Positions 47,135-60,852 of a DNA stretch of 64,000 nucleotides are shown piece by piece. Position 1 is the stretch's first letter. The number at the start of each line of letters is the position of its first letter. The notes under the pieces were generated by a model. It was not told where the DNA came from. It did not search any database and was given only the letters and a program-made list of their open reading frames with translations. The translations under genes and the position numbers were made by a program. The DNA lies in sequence record PP885688.1, one strand, 5' to 3'.

Positions 47135-48583
47135 TTACTGCCCGTTATAGGGAAGAACGCCCGAGCCAGCAACGTTCATCACTACCTGCCAGGCCTCAGG
47201 CATGCGTGCAGCCACACCATTGGGCCCAACCAGCGGTTCTACCTTCTTATACGCGGCCACGATCTCATCCAGAACCCTAAGGGCCTGCTTGCGATCGCTT
47301 ATGTTGCCCTCCAGCTGCTCCGTGGCGACGTACTCCAAGGCATTGCGGAAGAACGGGCCCGGCTCAACGAAGCGTTCTATCAGATCCTTGCCGGTGACCA
47401 GCTTGACCGGGTGAAGGACATGCTCCGGCGTCTCCGCCAGCACCTTCTCACAGAACTCCGCGTTGTCCATCTTGCCGGATCCGGACGAGGCATCCAGTTT
47501 GTGGAGTGCGAGCAGCTCGGGGAAGAGAGGCTGACCGACGAACTTGAGCAGCTTGCTCTTCCGCATCTCCTGCGTCACACGAAACTTCATGTGCTGGCTG
47601 ACGAGCATGAAGACGACCTGCTTGAACGCGACAGGGAACTTCAGACGAGTGAGTATCTCCTCCGCCTTGCGAGCACCGACGTGTTCGTGATCGTAGAAGG
47701 TAGGCTGACCATCCTTCAGACCGCGCGTCGCGGGCTTGCCTACGTCATGCAGCAACGCAGCCCATGCCAGTGTCGGAGAACAACCGTACTCCAGCTGACG
47801 CATCAGGCCCATAGTGTGGACGTAGACGTCGCCCTCGGGATGATGCTTCGGGTTCTGCTCGCATCCGTGCAGCTCTAAGACCTCTGGCAGCAAGGCATGC
47901 ATAAGCTTGGTTTCTTCCAGCAAACCAAGACCGTAGACTGCATCTCCAGAGGTGAGTATGAGCGTCAGCTCGTCCCGTACGCGCTCGGTAGGCACGTTGA
48001 GGACATCAGCCCACAACTTCCCTATCGCACGGCGGGTAAGGGCCTCAAGCTTGAACTGCAGCTTGGCGCAAAAGCGTACAGCACGCAGCATCCGCAGCTT
48101 GTCCTCACGGAACCGCGTCTCTGGATCCCCGACACACCGCACTATCCCCTGTGCCAGATCGAGCCGGGCACCCAGGTGATCTATGACGTTGCCGTCGCGA
48201 TCCATGAGTAACGTGTTCATGACGAAGTCGCGGCGCTGGAGATCCTCAAGGACGTCAGTGGTGTAGGCCACACTGTCAGGGCGGCGTGAGTCTGAGTAGA
48301 CGCCATCGAGGCGGAAGGTCCCGACCTCGAAGACCTCGTCCTCGAACTCGACGCGGCTCACACCGAAGTTGTTGCCGACTAGTACAGACTTCGGGAACAG
48401 CTCGGCTATCTCCTCCGGCGTCGCTGAGGTGCTGAGGTCATAGTCGTGTATCGGGCGGCCAAGGACATAGTCCCGGACGCATCCGCCAACCAGGTACGCG
48501 TGATAGCCCGCATCGTTGAGCAAACCGACCAGCCGCAAAGGCTTCGGGTCAACCGGGGTTCGTTCGTTAGTCAAGTCCAACAT
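47135..48583 (-). CDS. cca: CCA-adding enzyme / tRNA nucleotidyltransferase with HD domain
   Basis: YLVGGCVRD..DYDLST, RRDF, EDKLRMLRAVRF, HPEGDVYVHT..LLHDVGK. Confidence 0.92.
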   Translation of the reverse strand: MLDLTNERTPVDPKPLRLVGLLNDAGYHAYLVGGCVRDYVLGRPIHDYDLSTSATPEEIAELFPKSVLVGNNFGVSRVEFEDEVFEVGTFRLDGVYSDSRRPDSVAYTTDVLEDLQRRDFVMNTLLMDRDGNVIDHLGARLDLAQGIVRCVGDPETRFREDKLRMLRAVRFCAKLQFKLEALTRRAIGKLWADVLNVPTERVRDELTLILTSGDAVYGLGLLEETKLMHALLPEVLELHGCEQNPKHHPEGDVYVHTMGLMRQLEYGCSPTLAWAALLHDVGKPATRGLKDGQPTFYDHEHVGARKAEEILTRLKFPVAFKQVVFMLVSQHMKFRVTQEMRKSKLLKFVGQPLFPELLALHKLDASSGSGKMDNAEFCEKVLAETPEHVLHPVKLVTGKDLIERFVEPGPFFRNALEYVATEQLEGNISDRKQALRVLDEIVAAYKKVEPLVGPNGVAARMPEAWQVVMNVAGSGVLPYNGQ

Positions 48584-48992
48584 GCTCTTCCTCTTTCTTT
48601 GCGATCAGCGCCCATACGGCTGCGATCGTCCTAATATCCTGATACCCACCCCAAGGGTCTTTCACCCAATTACGGGGTCCATATTTTTCTACGGCCCAGG
48701 CCTGCGCCCGTGCCAGACAGTTTTTCTTCGCTTCAGCACCTTCGCCCGAGCTGGGATAGAAGGTCTTGTGTCCCTCGTTGTACCAGGGCCCTGCCGGATC
48801 CGACTTCTCACCGACCCGATGCACCTGGGAGATGTGAAGGGAGCTCCTACCTCCGCCGACCGACCCTCCGTTGTAGACATACAGCGGATCTGGTCCACAC
48901 TTCGCGATCTCGTGGGAGTTGAAGATCCTGACGGCCCGCATCTGGTCCCGCGTGGGGAACTTCGTCGGGTTCTTCGGAATCCTCACGCTCAT
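48567..48992 (-). CDS. Hypothetical protein
   Basis: ATGA-coupled to the upstream gene. Confidence 0.65.
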   Translation of the reverse strand: MSVRIPKNPTKFPTRDQMRAVRIFNSHEIAKCGPDPLYVYNGGSVGGGRSSLHISQVHRVGEKSDPAGPWYNEGHKTFYPSSGEGAEAKKNCLARAQAWAVEKYGPRNWVKDPWGGYQDIRTIAAVWALIAKKEEEHVGLD

Positions 48993-49249
48993 ACTCGAAC
49001 CCATTTCGTCTTACCTAGCCACCAATGCCGCCAGATCACCCACTGCAGGTACAGAGCCCCAACAAATAGGGCGGTGGTGTGGCGGGTGATGAGTGCAAGC
49101 GCTATCGATAGCACTGCGTCCTGCGCCCCGATGAGCCACTTGCGGGTAGTGGAAATATCATCCCGAGTGCCGGTCGGAGGTAGCTTGACCGTCACGATGT
49201 TGGATCTCCGGTCGGCGTTCCTGGCGAAGAAGCCCTGGTGATGCCTCAT
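48989..49249 (-). CDS. Small membrane protein (one hydrophobic segment)
   Basis: Hydrophobic AVLSIALALIT..ALFVGALYLQWVIW; coupled start/stop. Confidence 0.6.
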   Translation of the reverse strand: MRHHQGFFARNADRRSNIVTVKLPPTGTRDDISTTRKWLIGAQDAVLSIALALITRHTTALFVGALYLQWVIWRHWWLGKTKWVRV

Positions 49250-49440
49250 GCTGCGATAGTCCTTTCAGCGACGAGCCGGATCTTGGGACCGAGCTTCTTG
49301 ACCAGCCGATCCGCCTCCATCAGCGCCTCGGTGCGGGTCATGGCTGGGGTCTCCCGCTGGAGATCGTTGGCGAGCACGGCCACGGACTGAACGATCTCGT
49401 TGATTGGGTGAAGGCCGAGAGCGTACTCGTTAGCTGTCAT
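49246..49440 (-). CDS. Hypothetical protein (64 aa)
   Basis: GAGGAG SD before ATG 49440. Confidence 0.65.
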   Translation of the reverse strand: MTANEYALGLHPINEIVQSVAVLANDLQRETPAMTRTEALMEADRLVKKLGPKIRLVAERTIAA

Positions 49441-49460
49441 GGAACTCTCCTCTCTCAATT

Positions 49461-49925
49461 CTAGTTGGGCTGCGTGAAGTAGCCATAGACGCAGCGGGTG
49501 CCTCTCCGCGAGCAGTCATACGTATCGTGAATGGCTCCGTCGATCACGGCGACCATATGTTTGCTCACCTTGACGATCAACCGACCCGCAGGCAGCTCCG
49601 AGGACTTGAGGTGAACCTTGCAGCCAGACCCGATTGTCATAGTCGGCGTCCACACCCATCCCAGGGATTCCAGGTAGCGGCGAGAGGTGTCTTTGTACAC
49701 GCCGTTACGGGCGCTGGAGAGACGCTTCTTACGCCTGGTGATACGTTCCTTTGTTGCCAGACCGTTGAGCGCGTCATAGACCTCCTGATACGGCTTGCCG
49801 GTGGCGATCGCGATGGCCCGGGTGACGCAGTCTCCTACCTTCCCTTTGTATCCCGCCGCCAACCTGCCGCCGTCGTTGAAGACGTGCTCGCTATGGCCGG
49901 TCGGTGCTGTCAGTACTCCGTTCAT
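49461..49925 (-). CDS. Conserved phage protein, possible papain-like (C39-related) fold
   Basis: GDCVTRAIAIATG..YQEVY and KHMVAVIDG..HDTYD; GGAGGT SD before ATG 49925. Confidence 0.55.
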   Translation of the reverse strand: MNGVLTAPTGHSEHVFNDGGRLAAGYKGKVGDCVTRAIAIATGKPYQEVYDALNGLATKERITRRKKRLSSARNGVYKDTSRRYLESLGWVWTPTMTIGSGCKVHLKSSELPAGRLIVKVSKHMVAVIDGAIHDTYDCSRRGTRCVYGYFTQPN

Positions 49926-49951
49926 TACCTCTCCCTTCCGGTTGGTGATAC

Positions 49952-50398
49952 TTACTCGACTCGCTTCCAGAGAAGCAGGGCAGGTGCGAAGTAGCGCTCC
50001 CGGTCGGTCATGTCCCGCCATGCGGTGAGCTCAGGCCATGCTGCGATCTGAGCGCGGGATGCTGGCTTGACTCGAGCCGGAGCACCCTTGTCGGTCGACC
50101 GCCACGGGTAATCCTTCTTCCAGTTGCCTATCTTCACGTGGTTCACGCTGGCCTTGTTGAGGGTCTCAGCTTCGCCGTAGACTTCGCGGCCACCGACGGC
50201 GACCAGCTCGTACCGGATGCCCTCAAGCTTCGCCGCGCGTACAGGCCGGGTGCCGTCCGCAGTCTTCAGGCATCCGTGGTTCTTACCACCGCAGCTGCAT
50301 CGGCAGACCAGCTCCTGGGCGGACCAGCAGGCCTCGCCGCAGGTCGTGTGAGTCAAGATTGCGATGATGTCAGCGGTCAATGTCGTGGTCTGCGTCAT
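49952..50398 (-). CDS. Cys-rich hypothetical protein
   Basis: CGEACWSAQELVCRCSCGGKNHGC cluster. Confidence 0.7.
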   Translation of the reverse strand: MTQTTTLTADIIAILTHTTCGEACWSAQELVCRCSCGGKNHGCLKTADGTRPVRAAKLEGIRYELVAVGGREVYGEAETLNKASVNHVKIGNWKKDYPWRSTDKGAPARVKPASRAQIAAWPELTAWRDMTDRERYFAPALLLWKRVE

Positions 50399-50411
50399 GG
50401 TGTCCTCTACC

Positions 50412-50444
50412 TCAACCTACAAACCGAAAAGTGCGAAAGATGAA
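50412..50444 (-). promoter_or_regulatory. Class A promoter-like motif (TTCATCTTT-N13-TTGTAGGTTGA)
   Basis: Exact consensus. Confidence 0.8.
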
Positions 50445-50465
50445 AACGGGGGAAAGATTCTTCCC

Positions 50466-50801
50466 CTAGTCCATCGCGTAGTACATGTGAGCGTCGACAC
50501 CGGTGGCGACGATGGCCTTGCGAGCTGCCTCCGCCATCACGGTGCGGCGGTTGCCCTGGCCGTTGTAGCAGTGGAGCGTGAGCCGACGACCGTGAAAGCC
50601 GTACTCGCTAAGAGTGACGAGGGCCTCGGGTACCTGGGCGATGATCTCGTTGACCTGCTTCTCGCGCATGCCGGGAGTTGGGATGTAGGCGGAGTCAAAG
50701 TTGCAGGTGCCTCCATCGGCATCAGCGCCTTGGTCAGCAGCTTTGGCGGCAGCAACAGCGGCCTTGATGGCCTCAACGATCTTCGCGGTGTCGTACTTCA
50801 T
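50466..50801 (-). CDS. Hypothetical early-type protein (111 aa)
   Basis: Clean ORF in the small-gene block. Confidence 0.7.
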   Translation of the reverse strand: MKYDTAKIVEAIKAAVAAAKAADQGADADGGTCNFDSAYIPTPGMREKQVNEIIAQVPEALVTLSEYGFHGRRLTLHCYNGQGNRRTVMAEAARKAIVATGVDAHMYYAMD

Positions 50802-50836
50802 GGTGGGTCCCTTTCGTGTGATGGGTTAGGCGTGAA

Positions 50837-51190
50837 CTATGCGCGGGTGGCGACGTACGTCTTGGCACCGTCGAAGCGGTCGTAGTAATCCACGACCCTC
50901 TTGCGGGCTGAGGTGATCGCTTCCTTCGCGTTGTAGGCAAGGACCTCGATCGTGGTGCCGAAGTCGTCGCAGGCCGGATACTTCACGGTGATCTTGACTT
51001 TGTAGGTGTGAATGGTGCGAGCGGACCGTACGCGCGTCTTCTTCGCAGTGGGGGCTGTGACCTTACCGTCCAGGGCTGCGACGACTTCATCCGGGGTGCT
51101 CTTCTCTACCATGTTCTCGAAGATGCCGTTGATGAAACCGTAGAAGACCTGCTTGCCGTTCCGCATCAAGATTCCGACTCGTGGATCCAT
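50837..51190 (-). CDS. Hypothetical early-type protein (117 aa)
   Basis: ATG 51190 after class A motif and GAGGG SD. Confidence 0.7.
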   Translation of the reverse strand: MDPRVGILMRNGKQVFYGFINGIFENMVEKSTPDEVVAALDGKVTAPTAKKTRVRSARTIHTYKVKITVKYPACDDFGTTIEVLAYNAKEAITSARKRVVDYYDRFDGAKTYVATRA

Positions 51191-51210
51191 GTTGTTGTTG
51201 CCCTCTAAAT

Positions 51211-51243
51211 TCAACCTACAAACCAAAAAGGTCGAAAGATGAA
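51211..51243 (-). promoter_or_regulatory. Class A promoter-like motif
   Basis: Exact consensus, 13-nt spacer. Confidence 0.8.
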
Positions 51244-51260
51244 TTTGAGGGCAAACTTTT

Positions 51261-51809
51261 TTAGACGACGGCCTCGTTCACGATGAAGGTCTTGTCGATC
51301 GTGTTGTCGACCATGAACTCAAGTGTGCTGTCGACCGAGATCTGGTTATAGGACCAGGTGTCATAGCAAGACCAGCTGCTGCTGCTGATCTTCTGGTCCT
51401 GAACGAGGACGCGCTTGATCTTCAGACCCTTGCACATGAGTGTGACAAACTGTCCGAAGCTGGAGGGACGGACCGGCAACGCGTTCTGGACCTTGGCGAC
51501 AACCTTGAGGATGTCGACGAGTTCCTGGGCCTCGCTGACCCGTTCGATGTCGCGCACGTTGCGGAGACCGAGCGTCTGAGCGTAGACGCCCTTGTCCTTG
51601 CGAGCGGGCTCCCACTGGCAGTGAAACCGGAGAGCATTGAGCTTGCGATGCGTCCCCTCGAAGTCGCTTAGGTTGCGGACCTTCTTCTCGTTGCCGTCCC
51701 ACCCGACGAAGCCGATCGTCCACGTAGCGTACTCACCACCGCTGCGTTCGATTTGGGTGGGTGCGAGGAGGAGGGCGACGTTGCTGAGGTCCATCTTGGC
51801 TTTTGACAT
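51261..51809 (-). CDS. Hypothetical early-type protein (182 aa)
   Basis: Own class A motif and GGAG SD. Confidence 0.7.
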   Translation of the reverse strand: MSKAKMDLSNVALLLAPTQIERSGGEYATWTIGFVGWDGNEKKVRNLSDFEGTHRKLNALRFHCQWEPARKDKGVYAQTLGLRNVRDIERVSEAQELVDILKVVAKVQNALPVRPSSFGQFVTLMCKGLKIKRVLVQDQKISSSSWSCYDTWSYNQISVDSTLEFMVDNTIDKTFIVNEAVV

Positions 51810-51828
51810 GTGATCTCTCCGTTCTTAT

Positions 51829-51861
51829 TCAACCTACAAAGGGCGTCGCCCCAAAGATGAA
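51829..51861 (-). promoter_or_regulatory. Class A promoter-like motif
   Basis: Exact consensus, 13-nt spacer. Confidence 0.8.
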
Positions 51862-51874
51862 AATGCGTGAAAGT

Positions 51875-52129
51875 TTATTTGGCGTCGAGAATTGCGTCCG
51901 TCAGATCCTTCAGTTCCATCCGGATCGCGGTGAGGCGGGCGAGACGCGAATCATGCTCAGCGAGCGCGAGTGCGTAAGCGTTCTCCCCTTGAGGGTAGTA
52001 GTCTCGAGAGTTCGGCGCGGCCTGCCCTACGGCTTCGATGGCCTTACGGAGCGCTACCATGGCGACGATGTTGGGTTGGGCTAGATCGTCGCGGCTGGTC
52101 CCGTTGCGGTGGATCGTGGGCTTCATCAT
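51875..52129 (-). CDS. Hypothetical early-type protein (84 aa)
   Basis: AAAGGA SD upstream. Confidence 0.65.
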   Translation of the reverse strand: MMKPTIHRNGTSRDDLAQPNIVAMVALRKAIEAVGQAAPNSRDYYPQGENAYALALAEHDSRLARLTAIRMELKDLTDAILDAK

Positions 52130-52146
52130 GGAGGAGGTCCTTTCGG

Positions 52147-52446
52147 TTAGAGGCTGAGGGCGAGGCCGGTGCGGTCGGCGATCATACGGCGGAGGTCTTC
52201 GTTGTAGACACCTTCGGTGGTCTCCAGCAGGGTGTACTTCATACCGCGAATCTTGCCGAACTCGATGGTGTAGGTATCGGACGGGGCGAGGATGACCTTG
52301 ATGTAGTTGATCCCGTCCTTGGCCCAGTTGGTGGAGGGCAGCTTGAACGATAGGGCGTCACTGTGTCCCGTATAGTTCTTCGCGCCGGTCATTACGGTGA
52401 ACCGGCCACCACCAAGTTGCTGCAGGATTGTTTGTGCGATTGTCAT
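52147..52446 (-). CDS. Conserved phage hypothetical protein (MTIAQTILQQLGGGRFTVMTGAK)
   Basis: TAATG coupling to the upstream gene. Confidence 0.7.
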   Translation of the reverse strand: MTIAQTILQQLGGGRFTVMTGAKNYTGHSDALSFKLPSTNWAKDGINYIKVILAPSDTYTIEFGKIRGMKYTLLETTEGVYNEDLRRMIADRTGLALSL

Positions 52447-52667
52447 TAGTCCCATCCCTTGTGAGCGCGAGCCCAGTCGAAAGCCTTGTATTCGCCACGG
52501 GCGTACTCGATGCAAGCCTTGACGTCGACGCCGAACATGTCAGCATACAGTTCAAGATTGCGGGCGGCCTCGTAGCGGCTGTCTGAGATCTCGCGCTTCT
52601 CTTCGTGGGCGGTGTCCCACTCGTTCTGCATTGCCGAGTCCCAAACGTTTTCTGGTGTATATGCCAT
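52446..52667 (-). CDS. Hypothetical early-type protein (73 aa), probably leaderless
   Basis: ATG 6 nt after class A motif; no SD. Confidence 0.7.
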   Translation of the reverse strand: MAYTPENVWDSAMQNEWDTAHEEKREISDSRYEAARNLELYADMFGVDVKACIEYARGEYKAFDWARAHKGWD

Positions 52668-52673
52668 CTAACT

Positions 52674-52706: not shown

Positions 52707-52747
52707 ATTGAAACGAAAATAGTTTTACCGACTTCGGAGTTCAGAGT

Positions 52748-53134
52748 ATGAACTTCAAGTCCGTACTCTACCTCGACGACATGCGCACCCCGATCGTCTT
52801 CGGCATCGACGTCGTCCGCAACTATGAGCAGTTCGTATGGCACCTGCAGAACAAGGAGATGCCGAAGCTGATCTCCTTCGACCATGATCTTTCAACCGAG
52901 CACTACCCGGTCTTCGAGAACAAGCCGGGCATGCAGATCCCCTACGACGCCTACAAGGAGAAGACCGGCCTACACGCGGCGAGGTACATCATCGAGAACA
53001 AGCTGCCGCTACAGTACTGGATGGTCCACTCGATGAATGTGCAGGGTCGACTCAACATCGAGGCTGAGCTTCGACGCTACTGTCCCCAGGGCGAGCTGCG
53101 CGGCGTCACGATCCCGTATCGCATCAAGGGATGA
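52748..53134 (+). CDS. Cyclic-phosphate-processing receiver domain protein
   Basis: LYLDDMRTP..VRNYEQF..ISFDHDL..TG..VHSMNVQG pattern. Confidence 0.8.
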   Translation: MNFKSVLYLDDMRTPIVFGIDVVRNYEQFVWHLQNKEMPKLISFDHDLSTEHYPVFENKPGMQIPYDAYKEKTGLHAARYIIENKLPLQYWMVHSMNVQGRLNIEAELRRYCPQGELRGVTIPYRIKG

Positions 53135-53355: not shown

Positions 53356-53384
53356 AAGCCCCCAGCCTAAAGGCTGGGTTTTTT
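53356..53384 (+). terminator. Attenuator terminator before tRNA array 2
   Basis: CCCAGCC-taaa-GGCTGGG-TTTTTT; the 5' arm can alternatively pair with GGCGGGGG at 53309-53316. Confidence 0.8.
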
Positions 53385-53475: not shown

Positions 53476-53552
53476 TCCGGAGTAGCTCAGTGGTAGTAGC
53501 GGCTGGGCTGTTAACCAGAAGGTCGGGGGTTCGATCCCCTCCTCCGGAGCCA
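53476..53552 (+). tRNA. tRNA-Asn(GTT), apparent 8-nt anticodon loop
   Basis: Cloverleaf, G73, CCA; CTGG-gctGTTaa-CCAG. Confidence 0.8.
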
Positions 53553-53628
53553 ACAAGTGTAGTAGCAACACCCGACGCTCCCAGGAGCACCATCGGGCCG
53601 GTGGATTTTTGACAACCGAAGTGCATGT

Positions 53629-53706
53629 TGGGGAGTAGCTCAAGTTGGTAGTAGCGCCTGACTCTGAATCAGGAGGTTAGAGGTTCGAGGCCTCTCTCCC
53701 CAACCA
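53629..53706 (+). tRNA. tRNA-Gln(CTG)
   Basis: CCTGA-ctCTGaa-TCAGG, CCA. Confidence 0.92.
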
Positions 53707-53724
53707 ACAAGTTTAGTTTCACGA

Positions 53725-53800
53725 TGGGCAGTGGAGTAATCGGTAGCTCACCTGACTTTGAATCAGGACGGCGTGGGTTCGAGCCCTACCTGCCCAACCA
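53725..53800 (+). tRNA. tRNA-Gln(TTG)
   Basis: CCTGA-ctTTGaa-TCAGG, CCA. Confidence 0.92.
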
Positions 53801-53820
53801 TCAACATTCTCTTTCCCAGC

Positions 53821-53913
53821 GTGCCAGCGTTGGACGGTAGAGAACCGGAGAGCGCAACAAGCCTCCGTGGAGCTGGCGAGTCCGACACCGTCCTGGTGTC
53901 CGGCCACACTCCA
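53821..53913 (+). ncRNA. Candidate pseudoknotted small RNA ending in CCA
   Basis: Crossing helices 53823-28/53872-77 and 53830-35/53880-85; hairpin GACACC/GGTGTC. Confidence 0.35.
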
Positions 53914-53917
53914 AAAT

Positions 53918-53992
53918 GCGGGATTAGCTCAGTGGTAGAGCGCAACCTTGCCAAGGTTGAGGTCGTGGGTTCGAGCCCCACATCCCGCTCCA
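53918..53992 (+). tRNA. tRNA-Gly(GCC)
   Basis: Canonical cloverleaf, U73, CCA. Confidence 0.95.
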
Positions 53993-53998
53993 ATTTCA

Positions 53999-54030
53999 AT
54001 ATTCACCCTCGTGACCACTTCCGAGGTATT
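53999..54030 (+). promoter_or_regulatory. Class B promoter-like motif (ATATTC-N19-AGGTATT) inside tRNA array 2
   Basis: ATATTCACCCT box also seen at 62800; conserved spacing. Confidence 0.65.
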
Positions 54031-54049
54031 AGCAAGTAGACATCAACAC

Positions 54050-54125
54050 GCCCGGGTAGCTCAGTGGTCAGAGCGCCTGCTTCGTAAGCAGAGGGTCGTC
54101 GGTTCAACTCCGACTCTGGGCTCCA
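54050..54125 (+). tRNA. tRNA-Thr(CGT)
   Basis: Cloverleaf, loop ttCGTaa, CCA. Confidence 0.92.
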
Positions 54126-54147
54126 ACTCGAACGAAAGGAGACTGTC

Positions 54148-54669
54148 ATGAGCAAGCTGATGAAGAGGCCGGTACTCGTACTCAACGCCTACTACGAGCC
54201 AATCAGTATCACCCCGGCGCAGAATGCCATGAAGCTCCTCGTCAAGGGTGTCGCTGACGACATCACGGAGCCAGAGCAAGACGCTCGCTTCGTTCACATC
54301 AATTTCAGACTGCCGAGCGTTGTCCGTCTGTCTCAGTACAGGCGCATCCCGTACCGGCATGTCATGCCTCACCGGCACAACATCATCCTTCGCGACGGCA
54401 ACACCTGCCAGTACTGCTACCAGGTGTTCCCAAGCATCCAGCTCACGATGGATCACGTCATCCCCCGTGCGCAAGGCGGTAAGTCGACCTGGGAGAACCT
54501 GGTCGCCGCATGCCAGCCCTGCAATGGATTGAAGGCTGACCGTACGCCGGAGCAGGCAGGTATGGAACTCCTCAGGGTGCCGAGGATGCTGTCGATCCAC
54601 ACCTCGCGGCACATGCTGCGGATGCTGGGTAGCACAGATCCGAACTGGAGGAAGTACCTGTACCACTAA
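54148..54669 (+). CDS. HNH endonuclease
   Basis: RDGNTCQYC..TMDHVIPRAQGGKSTWENLVAACQPCN..K. Confidence 0.92.
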   Translation: MSKLMKRPVLVLNAYYEPISITPAQNAMKLLVKGVADDITEPEQDARFVHINFRLPSVVRLSQYRRIPYRHVMPHRHNIILRDGNTCQYCYQVFPSIQLTMDHVIPRAQGGKSTWENLVAACQPCNGLKADRTPEQAGMELLRVPRMLSIHTSRHMLRMLGSTDPNWRKYLYH

Positions 54670-54676
54670 CTTCAAC

Positions 54677-54752
54677 GCCGCCGTAGCTCAGTTGGCAGAG
54701 CACTCCCTTGGTAAGGGAAAGGTCATCGGTTCGACTCCGATTGGTGGCTCCA
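54677..54752 (+). tRNA. tRNA-Thr(GGT)
   Basis: Cloverleaf, loop ttGGTaa, CCA. Confidence 0.93.
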
Positions 54753-54756
54753 TAAA

Positions 54757-55075
54757 TGTGGACTCTGGTTTGGTCCAGTCTAAAGACTCCGTACCTGGAA
54801 GCACTCCGGTGCTGCAGACGACGGGGCAGTCTCCTACGATCTGCCTGAAAGGAATCTGGTGAGCCTTGGCCCCAGTGACCGGGATGGTTGATGAGCATTG
54901 CGACCCATCGGACGCGAGCGGGAATCCGGCGATAACCGGAGATAGAAACACTCGTTTGTCTCGACCGTAGAACAGGGCGACACCTGCCCGGACGTAACCT
55001 CTGCGAAGAGGGTCATAAGCGCGATGATGGTCGCGACTGAGTCCAGTGGTGAATACCTCGGAGAGAGCTCCGGCA
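54757..55075 (+). ncRNA. Candidate large structured ncRNA (~300 nt)
   Basis: No convincing ORF; closing helix TGGACTC/GAGTCCA and at least 7 local hairpins, one with a GCGA tetraloop. Confidence 0.5.
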
Positions 55076-55094
55076 TAAAGTTTAGGAGAGTCGT

Positions 55095-55493
55095 ATGGCG
55101 AAGAAGAGTAAGGTCAGGATCCCACCACCCGCGCCCGCAATCGACCAGTGGTCGTTCCGCACCGCAACGGTCTGCTCCAGCTGCTTCAACAGCAAAGGTC
55201 ACGGTCAGGTATGCGATGGAAAGCCGCTTCGGTTCCTCTCCATCAACGATGTCACGGAGTACGAGACGAACGCAATGATTGCCCAGCTTCGTGAGGAGCT
55301 CAAGACGATCGGCCTCGACTACCTGGTTCACCCTGATCGTAAGGACGGACAGTACGCGCGGGCTTATGTAATTCTTCTCGGGGACCATGTTCCGTATCCG
55401 GAAGAGTTCGACAAGATCTTCCTCCGCGTGATGGAGCCAGACGATCCAGAGGATCTTCCCGTACGGGAACATGCTGGCATAGCTCAGTGGTAG
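55095..55493 (+). CDS. Hypothetical protein (132 aa) with CxxC; 3' end overlaps tRNA-Thr(TGT)
   Basis: AGGAG SD; stop codon 21 nt inside the tRNA. Confidence 0.7.
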   Translation: MAKKSKVRIPPPAPAIDQWSFRTATVCSSCFNSKGHGQVCDGKPLRFLSINDVTEYETNAMIAQLREELKTIGLDYLVHPDRKDGQYARAYVILLGDHVPYPEEFDKIFLRVMEPDDPEDLPVREHAGIAQW

Positions 55494-55547
55494 AGCGTCT
55501 GATTTGTAATCAGAGGGCCGGGGGTTCAAGTCCCTCTGTCAGCTCCA
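55473..55547 (+). tRNA. tRNA-Thr(TGT)
   Basis: TCTGA-ttTGTaa-TCAGA, CCA. Confidence 0.93.
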
Positions 55548-55605
55548 GTCGTTGACAGCGTAAAGTCCGTCAAGTCGAAGACGTAAAAACTTCGGCCAAG
55601 TTTGT

Positions 55606-55683
55606 CGAGGTGTAGCGCAGTCTGGTCAGCGCACTCCGTTTGGGGCGGAGGGGCCAGTGGTTCGAATCCACTCACCTCGACCA
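55606..55683 (+). tRNA. tRNA-Pro(TGG)
   Basis: C1:G72, A73, CTCCG-ttTGGgg-CGGAG. Confidence 0.94.
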
Positions 55684-55719
55684 TCAACATCGAACGCTGT
55701 GTCGTCGCGTTCAGCAAGC

Positions 55720-55798
55720 TGCGGGAATTGAGCTACAGTGCGCTCGCTGGTTTCATATGCCAGAACGTACCCGGTGCCAACTCCGGGTCCCGCAACCA
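55720..55798 (+). tRNA. Non-canonical tRNA(CAT) (Met- or Ile2-like)
   Basis: 7-bp acceptor, CAT anticodon, CCA; D loop lacks GG, T loop TGCCAACT. Confidence 0.65.
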
Positions 55799-55831
55799 AT
55801 CAGAACGCTGAGTCCGCCGCGTTCGTCAAGT

Positions 55832-55911
55832 GTGGTCGTGCTAACTGCGGGCATGTTAGAGCAGACTGTGAATCTGTCTTCTCGTGGGTCCGACTCCCAC
55901 CGACCACCCCA
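55832..55911 (+). tRNA. Non-canonical tRNA-His(GTG)
   Basis: GCAGA-ctGTGaa-TCTGT, C73, CCA; T loop TCCGACT; base -1 is T rather than G. Confidence 0.75.
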
Positions 55912-55988
55912 TGTAGTGATAACCGGTGCTTTCTTACCGGTTAGAAGCAAAAACCCTCGTAACCGGTGGAATTGTACCGCTTATAGAT

Positions 55989-56064
55989 GGGCCGTTAGCT
56001 CAGTTGGGAGAGCGCATTCATGGCATGAATGAGGTCAACGGTTCGAGCCCGTTACGGTCCACCA
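55989..56064 (+). tRNA. tRNA-Ala(GGC)
   Basis: G3:U70, CCA. Confidence 0.93.
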
Positions 56065-56293
56065 CTTTCAACGCACCTCGGAGGAAGCCATGTCACAGCG
56101 GGACGCTATTGGAGCTGTCCAGGATGTGGAGTAAGGCGCGACTTTGATCCGCGCAGCGAGTGTCGCTGCTACCGGTGCCAGGTCACGTTCGATGCGGACC
56201 AGCTCGTCCGCAGTCACCTAACCGGGAATGATGCGATCCCGTTCGGAGAGAAGCTCAATCGTCTCTTCGATCCCGACGCATGAAAAAGTTTTT

Positions 56294-56369
56294 GGGGCTG
56301 TAGCTTAGTTGGGAGAGCGCTTCGTTCGCAACGAAGAGGTCAACGGTTCGATCCCGTTCAGCTCCACCA
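56294..56369 (+). tRNA. tRNA-Ala(CGC)
   Basis: G3:U70, CTTCG-ttCGCaa-CGAAG, CCA. Confidence 0.93.
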
Positions 56370-56494
56370 CAAGTTTGTACAATTCCTGACTTTTGCACAC
56401 ATTAGTACAAGTCAGTGGAGGAAACAATGCGATGCGTAAAGAGACGTGGTGCAAGGGGGCCTATGCGTTAGGTGTCTAAAGGAACACCTACCGT

Positions 56495-56806
56495 ATGTGC
56501 ACTCAGAACTACTGGAAGGACATCGTTGAAACTCGCGATAGTCATGACTGGCCGGATTGGCCTGAAGATACTCGACGCAAGAGACGTTGGAAGCGCAGAC
56601 TCGGTCTCGAGATGGACTCACCCGAGTGGCTGGTCTGGAGAGTCACCTGTAAGCCTCCTGGTCCTGTCAACCGTGACTTCCGTCGTATCACACGCAACAC
56701 CATGAATCGCACCCTGCGCAACGCTATCGCGCACGGTGACGACTTCGAAGACCTCAACATCGAGTCCCGACCTTCCCGGCTGGAAGGGCGCGATCGGTGG
56801 TTCTAA
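56495..56806 (+). CDS. Basic Arg/Trp-rich hypothetical protein (103 aa)
   Basis: Most protein-like frame in the interval; start uncertain. Confidence 0.55.
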   Translation: MCTQNYWKDIVETRDSHDWPDWPEDTRRKRRWKRRLGLEMDSPEWLVWRVTCKPPGPVNRDFRRITRNTMNRTLRNAIAHGDDFEDLNIESRPSRLEGRDRWF

Positions 56807-56809
56807 TTT

Positions 56810-57085
56810 CGGCTCGACACTGGCTATCCCTGAAGGAATATTGCTGGACAGGGAGTGTAGTAAGGCGGTGTCCCCCTATATGTAAGGCCTGCGAAAGGGG
56901 CATGCGGCAACCCGGGGTTCGCCCCGGGACACATTGAGGTGAGCCCCCTAGTAGTCTCTGCCCGTCAAAGGCCGTCCACGGTCGTTGGGCATACGAATGG
57001 GAGTCCCCGTACCCCGGCTGTGGAACAGGCCGACGGTATCGCACGAGGGGAAGACCCGAGGCTCCGGCCTCGGGACACATTAGAA
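56810..57085 (+). ncRNA. Candidate structured ncRNA (~270 nt)
   Basis: No convincing ORF; UUCG-capped 7-bp hairpin; duplicated hairpin+GGGACACATT module. Confidence 0.45.
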
Positions 57086-57090
57086 AGATT

Positions 57091-57165
57091 GGGCGCGTAG
57101 TTCAGCGGGAGAACGTCTGCCTTGCACGCAGAATGTCGGGGGTTCGATCCCCTCCGCGTCCACCA
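57091..57165 (+). tRNA. tRNA-Ala(TGC)
   Basis: G3:U70, TCTGC-ctTGCac-GCAGA, CCA. Confidence 0.93.
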
Positions 57166-57291
57166 CAACATTCAACACAAGTGTCTCAGCGTGGAAACCG
57201 TCCGGCCTGTCGTGATCAGGTCGAAGCCGGATCAACGGTCCACGCGAGGCGATCAGCCGGGTAAGCCACACACGACTTCCCGAGCACCAAT

Positions 57292-57367
57292 GGCCCGTGT
57301 AGCTCACCGTTAGAGCGGCTGTCTGAAGAACAGCGCGTAGTGGGTTGAATTCCCATCCGGGCCACCA
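57292..57367 (+). tRNA. Divergent tRNA-Phe(GAA)
   Basis: GCTGT-ctGAAga-ACAGC, CCA; bulged acceptor stem, D loop without GG, T loop TTGAATT. Confidence 0.7.
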
Positions 57368-57380
57368 AATTCTCAAAACG

Positions 57381-57412
57381 ATAATCACCCTCGTGGCCTC
57401 CTCATGGGTATT
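57381..57412 (+). promoter_or_regulatory. Class B promoter-like motif (ATAATC-N19-GGGTATT)
   Basis: Exact consensus. Confidence 0.75.
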
Positions 57413-57425
57413 ACCCAGACAGGAG

Positions 57426-57698
57426 ATGTACATGAAGACACTTAAGAACGGACTAACGCTCCTCGCGCTAGTTGTCCTGCTCGGATGCACGGGATGCACC
57501 GGCGCAGCGAGATCAAACCTGGCGGCCTACGGGCAACAACACCACATCAAGCAGTTCAGCGGCGGTCAGTTGATCGGCGAGTGGGACTCGACGGGCATGG
57601 TCAGCAACGAAGAGCAGAGCGACGGCATTTACTTCCAAGACGCAGCCACCGACAAGAAGGTGGAAGTCACGGGCACCCTGCAGATCACGGTCAAATAA
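57426..57698 (+). CDS. Putative lipoprotein (90 aa)
   Basis: AGGAG SD; basic/hydrophobic N-terminus with LLGC lipobox-like site. Confidence 0.7.
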   Translation: MYMKTLKNGLTLLALVVLLGCTGCTGAARSNLAAYGQQHHIKQFSGGQLIGEWDSTGMVSNEEQSDGIYFQDAATDKKVEVTGTLQITVK

Positions 57699-57707
57699 AA
57701 AATTTCA

Positions 57708-57739
57708 ATAATCACCCTTGTCGACTCGGCGTGGGTATT
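57708..57739 (+). promoter_or_regulatory. Class B promoter-like motif upstream of rtcB
   Basis: ATAATCACCCT-..-GGGTATT with conserved spacing. Confidence 0.75.
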
Positions 57740-57761
57740 GACCCGGTAGAGGGCCAATACA

Positions 57762-58943
57762 ATGTCGATGCAGTTAGTTGATGGAATCATCCCAGTGTTC
57801 GGCGAAGCAGACGAGAACACTCTCACCCAGATCCGCACGTGCTTGAAGACCGCCGATAAGGTCGCACTGATGCCGGACAACCACCTTGGCTACGGAGTCC
57901 CAATCGGGGGCGTAGTCGCTTACAAGGACGCCATCAGTCCCACCGGCGTCGGATACGACATCGGCTGCGGCAACAAAGCAGTCCGGCTCGACATCAGCGG
58001 CGAAGAGCTCCGCAAGGGCATCTACCGCACGATGAACGAGGTCTGGTCCAAGGTCAGCTTCGGTGTAGGCCGGAAGAACGGCGAGAAGGTTGACCACGCT
58101 CTGTTCGATGACGACGCCTGGAAGTTGAAGGCGATCAGTGGACTGAAGGATAAGGCACGGGCGCAGCTCGGCACCGTAGGAAGCGGCAACCACTATGTGG
58201 ACCTCTTCATCGACGAGCTCGACCGGGTATGGTGTGGGGTCCACTTCGGATCTCGTGGCTTCGGTCACGGTGCCGCAACGTGGTTCCTCAAGGCAGCGGG
58301 AGCGTCGGACGGCATGATGGTGGAGCCTTGTGTTCTGCCGACGTCAGGCAACCTCGGTGCTGAGTATCTGGAGGCCATGCGTCTCGCCGGTGAGTACGCT
58401 TACGCCGGTCGTGACTGGGTCTGCCAGAAGGTCGCGGACATTCTGCGGGCGAACATTGTGGAGGTCATCCATAACCACCACAACTACGCTTGGAGAGAAA
58501 CCCACGGCGGAGAGGATTTCTGGGTCGTCCGTAAGGGCGCTACTCCAGCTTTCCCGGGACAGAAGGGCTTCGTCGGTGCCACCATGGGCGAGGAGTCAGT
58601 CATCCTCGAAGGGGTCGAGAACGAGAACGCGAAGTACTCTCTCTACTCGACGGTGCATGGTGCTGGTCGTGCAATAGGTCGCATGATGGCGAAGGGTATG
58701 GTCGACAAGAAGACGGGCGCTGTGAAGCGTGCTGGTCTGGTGTCGCCGGACATGATGAAGGGTTGGGTCGACAAGGCAGGCATCGAGTTGCGTGGTGCCG
58801 GTATCGACGAGTCGCCTGACTGCTACAAGCGTTTGGACGTGGTGCTCGATCACGTTGCGGACTCGGTCAAGATCTTGCACCGCCTGACTCCGGTCGGTGT
58901 TGCGATGGCCGGAAGCAACGAGTTCGATCCCTACAAGGACTAG
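57762..58943 (+). CDS. rtcB: RtcB-family RNA ligase
   Basis: MPDNH.GYG.PIG, GYDIGCG, GSGNHY, HFGSRG, HNHHN, VRKGAT, HGAGR, DESPDCYK. Confidence 0.95.
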   Translation: MSMQLVDGIIPVFGEADENTLTQIRTCLKTADKVALMPDNHLGYGVPIGGVVAYKDAISPTGVGYDIGCGNKAVRLDISGEELRKGIYRTMNEVWSKVSFGVGRKNGEKVDHALFDDDAWKLKAISGLKDKARAQLGTVGSGNHYVDLFIDELDRVWCGVHFGSRGFGHGAATWFLKAAGASDGMMVEPCVLPTSGNLGAEYLEAMRLAGEYAYAGRDWVCQKVADILRANIVEVIHNHHNYAWRETHGGEDFWVVRKGATPAFPGQKGFVGATMGEESVILEGVENENAKYSLYSTVHGAGRAIGRMMAKGMVDKKTGAVKRAGLVSPDMMKGWVDKAGIELRGAGIDESPDCYKRLDVVLDHVADSVKILHRLTPVGVAMAGSNEFDPYKD

Positions 58944-58990
58944 TAGTGAAGGCCCCGGGAATGCTAACACATTCCTGGGGCCAGCAAGAT

Positions 58991-59067
58991 CGGAATGTAG
59001 CGCAGCCTGGTAGCGCACTTGTTTCGGGAACAAGGGGTCGAGAGTTCGAATCTCTCCATTCCGACCA
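58991..59067 (+). tRNA. tRNA-Pro(CGG)
   Basis: C1:G72, A73, canonical cloverleaf. Confidence 0.95.
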
Positions 59068-59073
59068 TTCATC

Positions 59074-59155
59074 CCCTATGTAGCGCAGTGGTCAGCGTGC
59101 CAGCCACGGTAGCAGAGGCTGGAGGTCGTTCGTTCGAATCGAACCATTGGGGCCA
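59074..59155 (+). tRNA. tRNA-like RNA with an expanded (11-13 nt) anticodon loop
   Basis: Canonical acceptor, D and T arms and CCA; CCAGC-cacggtagcagag-GCTGG. Confidence 0.7.
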
Positions 59156-59171
59156 AGTTTATGAGGAGAGT

Positions 59172-59951
59172 ATGCACCACGTCATCCAAAACGATCTCTA
59201 CAACGAGCAAGGGTTCAACGCTCTGATGGATACGCTGACTGAGCTCGGCGCTCCGTTCACGGTAGTGAAGGTGATCCCGTTCGTTCATGAGCTGGAGCCG
59301 GACATCAACCTTGAAGGTGAGGTGATGGTTTGGGGCGCGACGACGTTAGGGCACATCTCCCGGCTCAAGGGTTGGACGCCAGGTGTGTTCAAGACCGATG
59401 AGTTCGATATGCGTGTGCTTCACGCACGGTACGGCGAGCACATGTTGAATAGTGACGCCGCCTTCTGCACGTTCTCAGAGCTCTCCTTTGAGGGAGTGAA
59501 GTTCGTTCGCCCAGTACACGACTCGAAGACCTTCACCGGCGCACTGGTCCACTCGGAAGAGATGGCTGCGTGGATTGAGAAGGTGCAGAGAGCGGAGAAC
59601 GATGGGTTCACGTCACTGGATAGTGACACGCCGGTGATGTACGCGGACCCGAAACAGATTCAGCTCGAAGCCCGCTACTTCGTAGTTGGTGGCAGGGTCA
59701 TCTCGGGCAGCACGTATCGGGTTCACGGGCGGTCCCAGAAGCACAATCTGGACAACAACCCAAACCTACGTGACCTGCAAGAGTTCGCCCAGTCAATGGT
59801 GGATCGCTGGAGCCCGGATCGGGCGTTCGTCATTGATGTGGCGATCACCGGCGACGATGAGTACAAGGTCGTTGAGATAAACGCATTGAACAACGCAGGC
59901 TTCTACGCCTGCAACATGGGAGCGGTCGTTCGCGCGATCGAATGTTTATGA
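59172..59951 (+). CDS. ATP-grasp domain protein (R2K/DUF4343-like)
   Basis: FVRP..DSKTFTG, EARYFVVGG..ISGSTY, FVIDVA..KVVEIN..NAGFY; GAGGAG SD before ATG 59172. Confidence 0.8.
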   Translation: MHHVIQNDLYNEQGFNALMDTLTELGAPFTVVKVIPFVHELEPDINLEGEVMVWGATTLGHISRLKGWTPGVFKTDEFDMRVLHARYGEHMLNSDAAFCTFSELSFEGVKFVRPVHDSKTFTGALVHSEEMAAWIEKVQRAENDGFTSLDSDTPVMYADPKQIQLEARYFVVGGRVISGSTYRVHGRSQKHNLDNNPNLRDLQEFAQSMVDRWSPDRAFVIDVAITGDDEYKVVEINALNNAGFYACNMGAVVRAIECL

Positions 59952-60325
59952 TCACAGCAAAGCAAGCACAAGCCGCAGCAGCCAAGAAGAAACGTGACGA
60001 AGCGAAAGCTGAACGCGCGAAGGTGAAGGAACGGGCTGATCGCCGCACCTCCGACCGCAAGTATGCAAAGACTCAGGTCCCTAGCGAGCTGGAGAAGATC
60101 GAGGCTCAGATCAAGGAAGCGATCGCTGCCGACGCGAAGGAGACACTTTACATCACGCGCGACAACTATGTTGGTGAGTGCCTCGTGGGGTGGCTCGTCC
60201 CCGCGCTCGTCAGGCTTGGATTCAAGGCTGAGCCGAAAGAGGTATATGTGCCAGGCGAGCGGGGCAGCTATGACGAACCGAGCTGGGACGCATACACGAG
60301 CCACCGCATCAGGATCGCGTGGTGA
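59948..60325 (+). CDS. Hypothetical protein (125 aa)
   Basis: ATGA-coupled to the ATP-grasp gene. Confidence 0.7.
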   Translation: MITAKQAQAAAAKKKRDEAKAERAKVKERADRRTSDRKYAKTQVPSELEKIEAQIKEAIAADAKETLYITRDNYVGECLVGWLVPALVRLGFKAEPKEVYVPGERGSYDEPSWDAYTSHRIRIAW

Positions 60326-60462
60326 GCAACGAGAAGTATCTGCCAACGGTGTTGATCGTCCTGCAGGTTGCCGCAGCGATCGTATACGCCTTTCACAAAG
60401 ACATGCGCCGCACAGTGTACTGGTTCTGCTGCGCAGCACTCACAGCATCGGTCACGTACTAG
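60322..60462 (+). CDS. Small two-TM membrane protein (46 aa)
   Basis: GTGA overlap; MSNEKYLPTVLIVLQVAAAIVYAFHKDMRRTVYWFCCAALTASVTY; not in ORF track. Confidence 0.65.
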   Translation: MSNEKYLPTVLIVLQVAAAIVYAFHKDMRRTVYWFCCAALTASVTY

Positions 60463-60470
60463 GAAATCGA

Positions 60471-60680
60471 ATGCACGCAGAGAAGAGATCAGGTCAGTTG
60501 AACGACGCCGGTGAGGCCGTCTACTTCGTCACAGCCGACGACGTTGTCCTTCTGGCCGGTAAAGTCGGAGTCGCCATCACAAAGAAGATCGCCGAAGAGT
60601 GGCTGAGAGATCCTAAGTCCCGCATCGAGCTCGAAGCTGCGATCGACGAACACATCAAGCACCGTATGCGGTGGTTGTAG
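60471..60680 (+). CDS. Hypothetical protein (69 aa)
   Basis: AGGA SD; 3' part of the 205-aa track ORF. Confidence 0.6.
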   Translation: MHAEKRSGQLNDAGEAVYFVTADDVVLLAGKVGVAITKKIAEEWLRDPKSRIELEAAIDEHIKHRMRWL

Positions 60681-60686
60681 CAACAT

Positions 60687-60764
60687 CCAAGGGTTTCAGT
60701 GGGAGGGCGGCGTGCATCTCGAGTGCACCGGTGCCGGAGCGTTCGATTCGCTCCCCTTGGGCCA
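60687..60764 (+). tRNA. Divergent tRNA-Arg(TCG)-like RNA
   Basis: Perfect acceptor CCAAGGG/CCCTTGG, T arm, GTGCA-tcTCGag-TGCAC, CCA; C at position 33, weak D arm. Confidence 0.55.
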
Positions 60765-60774
60765 AGTTTAGTTT

Positions 60775-60852
60775 CGGGATGTAGCGGAGCCTGGTTACCG
60801 CGCTAGTCTGGGGGACTAGAGATCGCTGGTTCGAATCCAGCCATCCCGACCA
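60775..60852 (+). tRNA. tRNA-Pro(GGG)
   Basis: C1:G72, A73, CTAGT-ctGGGgg-ACTAG. Confidence 0.93.

Follow-up and report, generated by a model that had tools for sequence, protein, structure and literature searches.

Why does a bacteriophage whose tRNA genes cover all 20 amino acids also carry, in the midst of those genes, enzymes from families that act on broken RNA ends? The question is raised by a 64,000-nucleotide stretch of sequence record PP885688.1 (hereafter the window; window coordinate + 186000 = record coordinate), in which an RtcB-family RNA ligase (gp296), a CCA-adding enzyme with an HD domain (CCA(HD), gp279), a cyclic-phosphate-processing receiver-like protein (cREC, gp291) and an R2K-clade ATP-grasp ligase (gp297) lie around and between tRNA arrays (Table 1). 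The window belongs to Tunturiibacter phage Tunturi_5 (100% identity over the region), a 308,711-bp myovirus from Finnish tundra soil that infects Tunturiibacter psychrotolerans X4BP1 (Acidobacteriota) and is the first jumbo phage isolated on Acidobacteriota. The genome paper counted 43 tRNA genes covering all 20 amino acids, and the only tRNA-processing genes it named were gp279 (tRNA nucleotidyltransferase) and gp296 (tRNA splicing ligase), with nothing further on either (PMC11924767).

A first-pass annotation made from the sequence alone had proposed a module to sense, replace and repair tRNA, and most of the genes on which it built were found in place: tRNAs (25, on the plus strand) around RtcB, a CCA enzyme with HD, cREC and an R2K ATP-grasp protein. 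Reading domains and residues from the proteins and assigning activities from their families, we arrived at an interpretation to which we give a probability of roughly 60%: the region is the core of a jumbo phage tRNA island, in which a near-complete tRNA set is joined to predicted enzymes for damaged RNA ends and would keep translation running. Protection against tRNA-targeting defences is a function that we only infer.

The island would work in several steps. The phage would supply its own tRNAs, and RtcB, using GTP and Mn2+, would join a 5'-OH end to one that bears a 2',3'-cyclic phosphate or a 3' phosphate, the kinds of end that metal-independent anticodon nucleases leave. The CCA enzyme would rebuild clipped 3' tails, its HD domain first removing a blocking 2',3'-cyclic or 2'/3' phosphate, if it behaves as the corresponding domain of E. 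coli Cca does. For cREC, the probable targets of hydrolysis are cyclic phosphate ends or molecules of the cyclic ADP-ribose type, and R2K most likely attaches an amino acid or a peptide to a translation protein. The likely benefit is translation that continues when tRNAs are cut by putative host defence nucleases or by infection stress.

A near-complete tRNA set with encoded CCA tails

ARAGORN placed 25 tRNA genes in the window, the larger part of the phage's complement, 25/25 on the plus strand. The Rfam tRNA model matched 21 of the 25; a 22nd, Ser CGA, appeared only sub-threshold as tRNA-Sec. A third array with 16 further tRNAs follows just past the window end (record 251.8-255.9 kb), and this near-complete phage set fits the part of the first-pass annotation that spoke of tRNA replacement. 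The sole Asn-type tRNA (GTT; 53476-53552, plus strand) has an additional base in or beside the anticodon loop and receives no identity from ARAGORN; the tRNAscan list of the genome paper contains one Asn tRNA, presumably this gene.

The 3' CCA is encoded in all 25 window tRNAs and in 15/16 tRNAs of array 3 (40/41), and in related contigs the share is 79-100%. This measure discriminates, because an unrelated tRNA-rich phage contig (L063) encodes CCA in just 1/29 tRNAs. Within positions 1-10000 of that 72-kb viral contig, the 29 tRNAs and a tmRNA gene immediately precede the gene of a distant RtcB relative. Since 40/41 of the Tunturi 5 tRNAs already encode their CCA, the CCA enzyme is not needed to mature them, and tail repair is therefore its only evident use on phage tRNAs.

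An RtcB ligase with a complete active site

The repair part of the earlier proposal also fits the sequence: RtcB has all its catalytic residues, the head and HD motifs of the CCA enzyme are intact, and the gene types recur in related tRNA islands. In RtcB, D66, C69, N143, H144, H161, H237 and H299 align with P. horikoshii D95, C98, N202, H203, H234, H329 and H404, which we take to be the metal-binding Asp, Cys, His and Asn residues and, for H299, the nucleophile that forms the His-GMP intermediate. The protein matches the Pfam RtcB model over its full length and above the gathering score; it does not reach the NCBIfam equivalog cut-offs (117.5 vs 407).

A phage precedent for such repair is T4, in which a kinase-phosphatase and an ATP-dependent ligase repair tRNA-Lys cleaved by PrrC. 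The proposed Tunturi 5 system would likewise be a phage heal-and-seal answer to an anticodon nuclease, acting on the same ends (2',3'-cyclic phosphate and 5'-OH); it differs in that its ligase is of the RtcB type, which by analogy would seal such ends directly. Absences in this region were established over its annotated open reading frames (ORFs) between 44 and 64 kb, and neither a T4-type polynucleotide kinase-phosphatase (HAD-type) nor an ATP-dependent RNA ligase was found there. The HAD phosphatase that the first-pass annotation had placed nearby was not recovered, as no annotated ORF at 44000-64000 matches the HAD family, even at E<=1 for unknowns. If our interpretation is right, the rescue of anticodon-cleaved tRNAs by RtcB and cREC would be an RtcB-based counterpart to T4 Pnkp-Rnl1.

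RtcB could also have a substrate other than cleaved tRNA, such as nicked rRNA in the style of bacterial RtcB2-PrfH, or else an RNA of the phage that has to be joined. There is documented precedent for the repair of ribosomes by PrfH with RtcB (PMC9304027), gp296 weakly matches the NCBIfam release-factor-associated RtcB family, and in one contig (L074) a relative of R2K adjoins a 175-aa release-factor-like gene. A phage RNA of the right kind might be the conserved tRNA-like element at 59074-59155 (plus strand), which begins 131 nt after rtcB and ends 16 nt before the R2K start codon. Its acceptor, D and T arms are normal and its CCA is encoded, and its anticodon loop has 11 nt; it falls below the threshold of the Rfam tRNA model, ARAGORN identifies it by mode as Pro, Ser, or Cys with a 4-nt 'intron', and it is kept in a close relative (L070, 2481-2562) whose R2K is 95% identical. 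However, the match to the PrfH-linked family stands at 93 bits, far below cut-off, no PrfH-like gene was detected at 44-64 kb, and no splicing endonuclease was found. We regard such a substrate as quite unlikely and keep cleaved tRNA as the preferred one.

A predicted CCA-adding enzyme with a probable role in tail repair

In Pfam, gp279 matches PolyA_pol (110 bits), PolyA_pol_RNAbd and HD. All head motifs are present (GGCVRD33-38, D47xD49, RRD117-119 and E160DxxR164), as is the HD signature (H247/H248 and H279-D280), with the HD domain itself scoring 35 bits vs 22 for PF01966 and 36.8 vs 27.6 for TIGR00277 HDIG. Among NCBIfam models the CCA enzyme scores highest (255 bits vs a cut-off of 290), with pcnB at 197 vs 306, and the alignment to the Geobacillus CCA enzyme 1MIV reaches 180 bits. 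The closest named relatives are ordinary Acidobacteriota CCA enzymes (46-49% identity), and this kinship suggests that the gene was captured from the phylum of the host; genome contigs scanned with the CCA enzyme returned no Acidobacteriota locus.

The tRNA genes of E. coli also encode CCA, and its CCA enzyme has a repair function, with an HD domain that removes 2',3'-cyclic or 2'/3' phosphates. gp279 shares with this multifunctional Cca the combination of a class II head and an HD phosphohydrolase domain, and the two occur in the same setting of CCA-encoding tRNA genes. The likeness has its limits: gp279 scores only 145 bits against the NCBIfam model of the E. coli enzyme (cut-off 451), and its head is closer to the Geobacillus and Acidobacteriota enzymes.

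The kinship with ordinary Acidobacteriota enzymes also fits another account, in which the region does translation housekeeping and has no part in counter-defence: the tRNAs would fit phage codon usage or replace host tRNAs lost in shut-off, while RtcB and the CCA enzyme handle tRNA wear. The genome authors read the tRNAs in this way (PMC11924767), and the region is without a defence-related trigger or sensor. Yet with CCA-templated tRNAs a second CCA enzyme would bring little gain unless tails were being lost, and the islands of relatives gather end-healing enzymes of a conflict type, namely RlaP, 2H phosphoesterase, Tpt1, Ro60, cREC and NADAR. Housekeeping is a possible account that we take seriously, although on balance we think it unlikely.

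Some defence systems are known to cleave tRNAs in the anticodon loop or at the CCA tail. One of them, Cas12a3, is an immune nuclease that removes the CCA tail; the study that describes it states that viral tRNAs cannot evade this cleavage and that resistance in viruses would call for other, unknown means (PMC12851939). A phage CCA enzyme that accompanies CCA-templated tRNAs is, by our own inference, an obvious candidate for resisting such cleavage. Should CCA(HD) indeed restore tails removed by a nuclease, it would be a first viral answer to tail-cleaving defences such as Cas12a3.

cREC as a predicted enzyme and the absence of a dedicated sensor

The first-pass annotation had also given the region a sensing part. 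Across 24 cREC homologues the invariant residues are D10, D11, R13, D45, H46, D47, H52, E71, K72, T73, G74, H94, S95 and N97; among them D10, D11, D45 and D47 are acidic residues at the catalytic positions of receiver domains. Judged by sequence, this is the pattern of a putative enzyme rather than of a phospho-relay module. The AlphaFold2 (AF2) model is of high confidence (pLDDT 94.8), and its fold matches in the PDB are weak (TM about 0.5) and nearly all to receiver domains.

Those who described cREC predicted a phosphoesterase that processes cyclic phosphates and is never part of two-component signalling (PMC7824862). gp291 fits their definition, in that it stands alone and is linked to an RNA ligase and to NAD-ADP-ribose enzymes: it lies 4.6 kb upstream of rtcB, and a polyvalent protein with NUDIX and ART domains lies 8 kb upstream of cREC. 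Homologues with 58-72% identity occur inside arrays in L075, with RlaP nearby, and in L076, with Ro60/TROVE and NADAR nearby, and cREC also lies inside an array in the nearest metagenomic relative (L069). A third homologue comes from a cellular-looking contig without tRNAs, where the adjacent gene, on the opposite strand, encodes a histidine kinase.

The bacterial rtcBA operon under RtcR uses the same ligase family and is likewise linked to damaged tRNAs, to which RtcR responds; there the CARF domain of RtcR serves as a true sensor and the cyclase RtcA is part of the system (PMC7790460), whereas no annotated ORF at 44-64 kb has a Pfam match to RtcR, a CARF regulator or RtcA. With cREC standing alone and its invariant residues enzyme-like, nothing in the island resembles a dedicated sensor, and this part of the earlier proposal is not supported.

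An R2K ligase with likeness to amide-forming enzymes

The AF2 model of R2K (pLDDT 92.9) has an ATP-grasp fold, with ArgX/LysX, RimK, PsnB and Ddl (D-Ala-D-Ala ligase) as the top Foldseek matches. The best of them, RimK and LysX/ArgX (TM about 0.6, E 1e-11 to 1e-9), add amino acids to the C-terminus of small proteins, ribosomal protein S6 and the carrier protein LysW, although their sequence identity to R2K is just 12-17%; a PDB sequence search with R2K gave no match. Because its likeness is to ligases that make amide bonds on proteins, peptides or amino acids and not to RNA ligases, gp297 is not an RNA-repair enzyme in the strict sense. The most likely substrate is therefore a protein of the translation machinery, to which it would attach an amino acid or a peptide, and not RNA.

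Residues R113, K119, E166, R168, D222 and E235 are invariant among the homologues. In the definition of R2K.3, an ExGD motif on the last strand replaces the usual ExN (Burroughs et al. 2015, PMC4431377). gp297 departs from this with E235-I-N237, in which N237 is nearly invariant within its clade, and we file it only as a member of the R2K clade because it has ExN in place of ExGD and because R2K_2 scores 62 bits.

Homologues with 40-61% identity were found in five further contexts. In four of them (L071, L073, L074 and Ralstonia phage RsoM2USA) the gene lies inside or right beside a tRNA array, and in the fifth, the P0002 contig, it stands between SmpB and a CCA(HD) gene. Neighbours at these loci include Tpt1, aminoacyl-tRNA-synthetase fragments, RlaP and a release-factor-like protein. 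More distant homologues (29-33% identity) vary in their surroundings: in Cronobacter phage GAP32, tRNAs, HNH and peptidyl-tRNA hydrolase lie close to the gene, and XacN1 and CcrColossus have no tRNA within 5 kb. In total, R2K homologues occur in 62 phage records, and 40/40 of those listed exceed 150 kb.

For cREC and the R2K ATP-grasps, neither of which has a known activity, repeated placement in tRNA arrays narrows the hunt for a substrate. A bolder version of our interpretation would make CCA(HD) a dedicated counter to tail-clipping defences and cREC and this R2K clade enzymes specific to tRNA islands, with R2K modifying a translation protein (e.g., a ribosomal protein or an elongation factor) to sustain translation under attack. 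Taken as a whole, this version is tentative and in our judgement unlikely.

Recurrence of the gene types in tRNA islands of other phages

CCA(HD), cREC and this R2K clade recur inside the tRNA arrays of diverged soil jumbo phages, which is a new observation. In two contigs, L078 (307 kb) and L079 (26 kb), a CCA(HD) homologue (50-54% identity) stands next to tRNA arrays; the one in L078 has genes around it for a polyvalent protein with ART, a 2H phosphoesterase of 530 aa, an RNase_T-like protein and His_Phos_1. A scan of viral contigs for close relatives, using single-protein patterns, returned nothing for CCA or R2K; it needs exact 8-residue words and is weak evidence of absence.

The nearest metagenomic relative (L069; IMG/VR 3300044713_000194) has RtcB and cREC each 74% identical, and over the 33.6 kb examined it has arrays, cREC, HNH and RtcB in common with Tunturi 5. 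There, only about 1.4 kb separates array 1 from the cREC gene that follows it, the 13-ORF leftward block is absent between them, and the RtcB-bearing array is inverted with respect to cREC. The short contig with the 95%-identical R2K (L070) keeps the order RtcB, tRNA-Pro, tRNA-like element, R2K, gp298 and gp299, and on a longer contig that carries the same R2K the series of genes extends to His_Phos_1 and an RNase_T-like gene. The tRNA order Trp-Asp-Met-Met-Lys is common to Tunturi 5 and several of the compared contigs.

Rearrangements of this kind would be expected if plastic tRNA islands were shuffled by homing endonucleases and collected unrelated accessory genes with no shared function. 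An HNH endonuclease sits inside an array in Tunturi 5 and in relatives, comparison with L069 shows the CCA-bearing block to have been inserted or deleted, and the arrays of that contig are inverted relative to each other, and a lipoprotein-like ORF and glycosyltransferase-like genes are intermixed. What speaks for a common role is that CCA(HD), cREC and the closer R2K clade stay in or beside the arrays of several contigs with varied neighbours and at 40-60% protein identity, when tRNA islands take up only ~7% of the Tunturi 5 genome (our post hoc estimate). We judge a co-location without shared function to be very improbable and prefer a tRNA island with putative provision and repair functions.

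Several points weigh against that interpretation nonetheless. gp279 is below its NCBIfam equivalog cut-off, so that an activity adding only CC or only A is possible. CCA, R2K and phosphatase went undetected in the 33.6 kb around the arrays of the nearest relative, and the recurring contexts are not fully independent, because several come from one broad soil jumbo phage lineage. RtcB is found in 522 phage records, 221 of them Mycobacterium phages, of which the listed ones are ~60 kb long. The island genes lie on two strands, and among them are many unknowns and unrelated genes such as a homing endonuclease and a lipoprotein-like ORF. CCA(HD), cREC and R2K recur in or beside tRNA arrays; RtcB is less tied to tRNAs, with a tRNA within 1.5 kb in 18/62 of its close relatives in viral contigs and no nearby tRNA in the other 44/62.

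The idea of provision plus repair is already published for jumbo phages, and the Tunturi 5 locus is a well-preserved example of it. Iyer, Anantharaman, Krishnan, Burroughs and Aravind (Viruses 2021) put forward the idea that attacks on translation are countered in jumbo phages by tRNAs of their own and by RNA repair, and their parts list, which includes RtcB, CCA-adding enzymes and the newly defined cREC, matches that of Tunturi 5 in both components and proposed purpose (PMC7824862). In their survey, R2K ATP-grasps figure as sporadic protein modifiers with no link drawn to tRNA islands, CCA-templated tRNAs are unremarked, and no Acidobacteriota phage is included (PMC7824862). Unlike the systems described there, the Tunturi 5 region has no ATP-dependent Rnl ligase, kinase-phosphatase or RlaP that we could see. 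What is added here is the CCA-templating argument, the repeated embedding of CCA(HD), cREC and the R2K clade in arrays, and a cultured phage-host pair; because Tunturi 5 is a cultured jumbo phage of Acidobacteriota, the predictions can be put to the bench with its host.

Organisation and expression

The island is a loose set of transcription units, not one operon. The leftward block diverges from the cREC gene and has the CCA gene as its second-to-last gene. The first-pass annotation had described the enzyme genes as interleaved with the arrays, which is an overstatement for the CCA gene, found on the minus strand in the interval that separates array 1 from array 2. Its term 'module' is too strong for genes on two strands and in several transcription units, with no CCA gene or R2K seen in the examined stretch of the nearest relative.

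The arrays had further been called attenuated. Stable hairpins with T-runs do stand at array borders, and the one ahead of array 1 is retained in L069, where the stem sequence differs and the T-run and the tRNA start are the same; as a class, however, terminator-like sites are not above chance (16 found vs 14.3 expected). Array 1 is probably reached by read-through, because its hairpin leaves no room for a promoter before the first tRNA. A scan for sigma-70-type promoters gave 2 sites vs 7.4 expected, a result that carries no information for this host. The phage programme, together with read-through of the hairpins that front the arrays, probably sets expression. No public sequencing runs were listed for a 4 kb stretch of the phage; for rtcB, only runs not shown to be RNA were listed, five of them probable DNA metagenomes of relatives and two, from the same study, with next to no matching words.

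Table 1 Features of the Tunturi 5 tRNA island and its flanks, in window coordinates.
Feature	Position	Strand	Evidence	Remarks
Hairpin + T-run 1	45279..45306	+	-23.5 kcal/mol, z -3.2	8 nt before first tRNA of array 1
tRNA array 1	45315..46480	+	ARAGORN, Rfam	9 tRNAs: Leu x4, Cys, Tyr, Ser x3; small ORF gp277 inside
Leftward block gp278-gp290	46764..52631	-		13 ORFs, 5.9 kb; recognisable function in gp279 only
gp279, class II CCA-adding tRNA nucleotidyltransferase	47135..48583	-	Pfam, NCBIfam, motifs	C-terminal HD (HDIG) phosphohydrolase domain
gp291, stand-alone cREC	52748..53134	+	PF20274 cREC_REC, 65 bits vs 27	GenBank 'nudix hydrolase'
Hairpin + T-run 2	53361..53378	+	-15.5 kcal/mol, z -2.9	After cREC, ~100 nt upstream of array 2
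tRNA array 2	53476..57367	+	ARAGORN, Rfam	13 tRNAs: Asn-like, Gln x2, Gly, Thr x3, Pro, His, Ala x3, Phe; gp292-gp294 interspersed
gp292, HNH endonuclease	54148..54669	+	Pfam HNH_5 and HNH	Inside array 2
gp296, RtcB-family RNA ligase	57762..58943	+	PF01139, 219 bits vs 27	
tRNA-Pro(CGG) + tRNA-like element	58991..59155	+	ARAGORN	tRNA-Pro(CGG) 47 nt 3' of rtcB stop
gp297, R2K-clade ATP-grasp ligase	59172..59951	+	PF14243 (R2K_3), 78 bits vs 26; PF18299 (R2K_2), 62 bits	
gp298	59948..60325	+		Start overlaps R2K stop (4 nt); conservation limited to close relative L070
tRNA-Pro(GGG) + closing hairpin	60775..60875	+	ARAGORN	tRNA at 60775-60852, island's last
Hairpin + T-run 3	60856..60875	+	z -4.1	4 nt after last tRNA, closes island
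gp303, histidine phosphatase superfamily branch 1	62875..63570	+	PF00300 His_Phos_1, 113 bits	GenBank 'DNA methyltransferase'

Neighbouring genes and sequence elements

A histidine phosphatase had been noted near the island, and gp303 confirms it, just outside the range first assigned to the region. It stands 2 kb beyond the island, after two glycosyltransferase-like genes and a terminator-like hairpin, and its link to the island is uncertain. In Tunturi 5, gp303 is followed by three ORFs, an RNase_T-family exonuclease (record 250944-251495; 1945-2496 in locus L003) and a Trp-Asp-Met array; in L078, His_Phos_1 and the RNase_T-like gene are adjacent and next to a Trp-Asp-Met array, and in a close relative they lie two genes apart. 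RNase T-type enzymes trim tRNA 3' ends, and the family also includes DNA proofreading exonucleases.

gp292 is probably a mobile homing endonuclease; its homologues occur inside tRNA arrays in five of the compared contigs (L007, L008, L043, L071 and L073), and an HNH gene is annotated in the tRNA region of GAP32. Just upstream of the island, a 1494-aa polyvalent protein (39787-44271, plus strand; GenBank 'MutT/NUDIX hydrolase') combines NUDIX, ART-PolyVal and GNAT domains, and ART-PolyVal proteins also adjoin the CCA gene in L078 and L079. Other GenBank names in the region are unsupported: the 'nudix hydrolase' gp291 is cREC and the 'DNA methyltransferase' gp303 is His_Phos_1, and the 'cytidyltransferase' gp289 (52147-52446) has no family match, only PHROG 9437 (function unknown). 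Directly 5' of rtcB, gp295 (57432-57698, plus strand) carries a lipoprotein-type signal, a hydrophobic stretch ending in LLGC, and is an odd neighbour for an RNA ligase; it has 69% identity to its counterpart in L070.

We considered gp298 as a conserved partner or substrate of R2K and rejected it. ORF starts overlap the R2K stop in 4/5 other R2K loci, but the closely following ORFs at these five loci are not homologous, and an Atlas search with gp298 returned viral hypothetical proteins only.

A functional coupling of RtcB with tRNA-Pro was rejected as well, since the pattern is more like that of a site at which temperate elements integrate. Of 12 metagenomic loci with a tRNA within 600 nt of the rtcB stop, 9 have tRNA-Pro as the nearest one downstream, and tRNA-Pro(UGG) abuts or overlaps that stop in six IMG/VR contigs (L017, L020, L023, L025, L026 and L035), once reversed. 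A sister contig (L019) retains only the 5' two-thirds of the tRNA-Pro, up to the T-loop, and the tRNA-Pro label is scattered inside one shallow RtcB clade.

Two smaller elements accompany the tRNA genes. Just 5' of tRNA-Pro(GGG), the stretch at 60720-60765 (plus strand) resembles a T-arm and a 3' acceptor strand ending in GCCA; ARAGORN calls no tRNA there, and it may be the remnant of a decayed one. The heptamer CAAGTTT occurs 10 times in the window vs 4.0 expected, a count reached in no shuffle, and its plus-strand copies (45402, 53397, 53708, 55597, 56370, 59154 and 60763) fall 7/7 within the tRNA island. Four of these seven lie at or right after a tRNA 3' CCA, and two more copies occur in array 3; the heptamer may be a processing or spacer signal.

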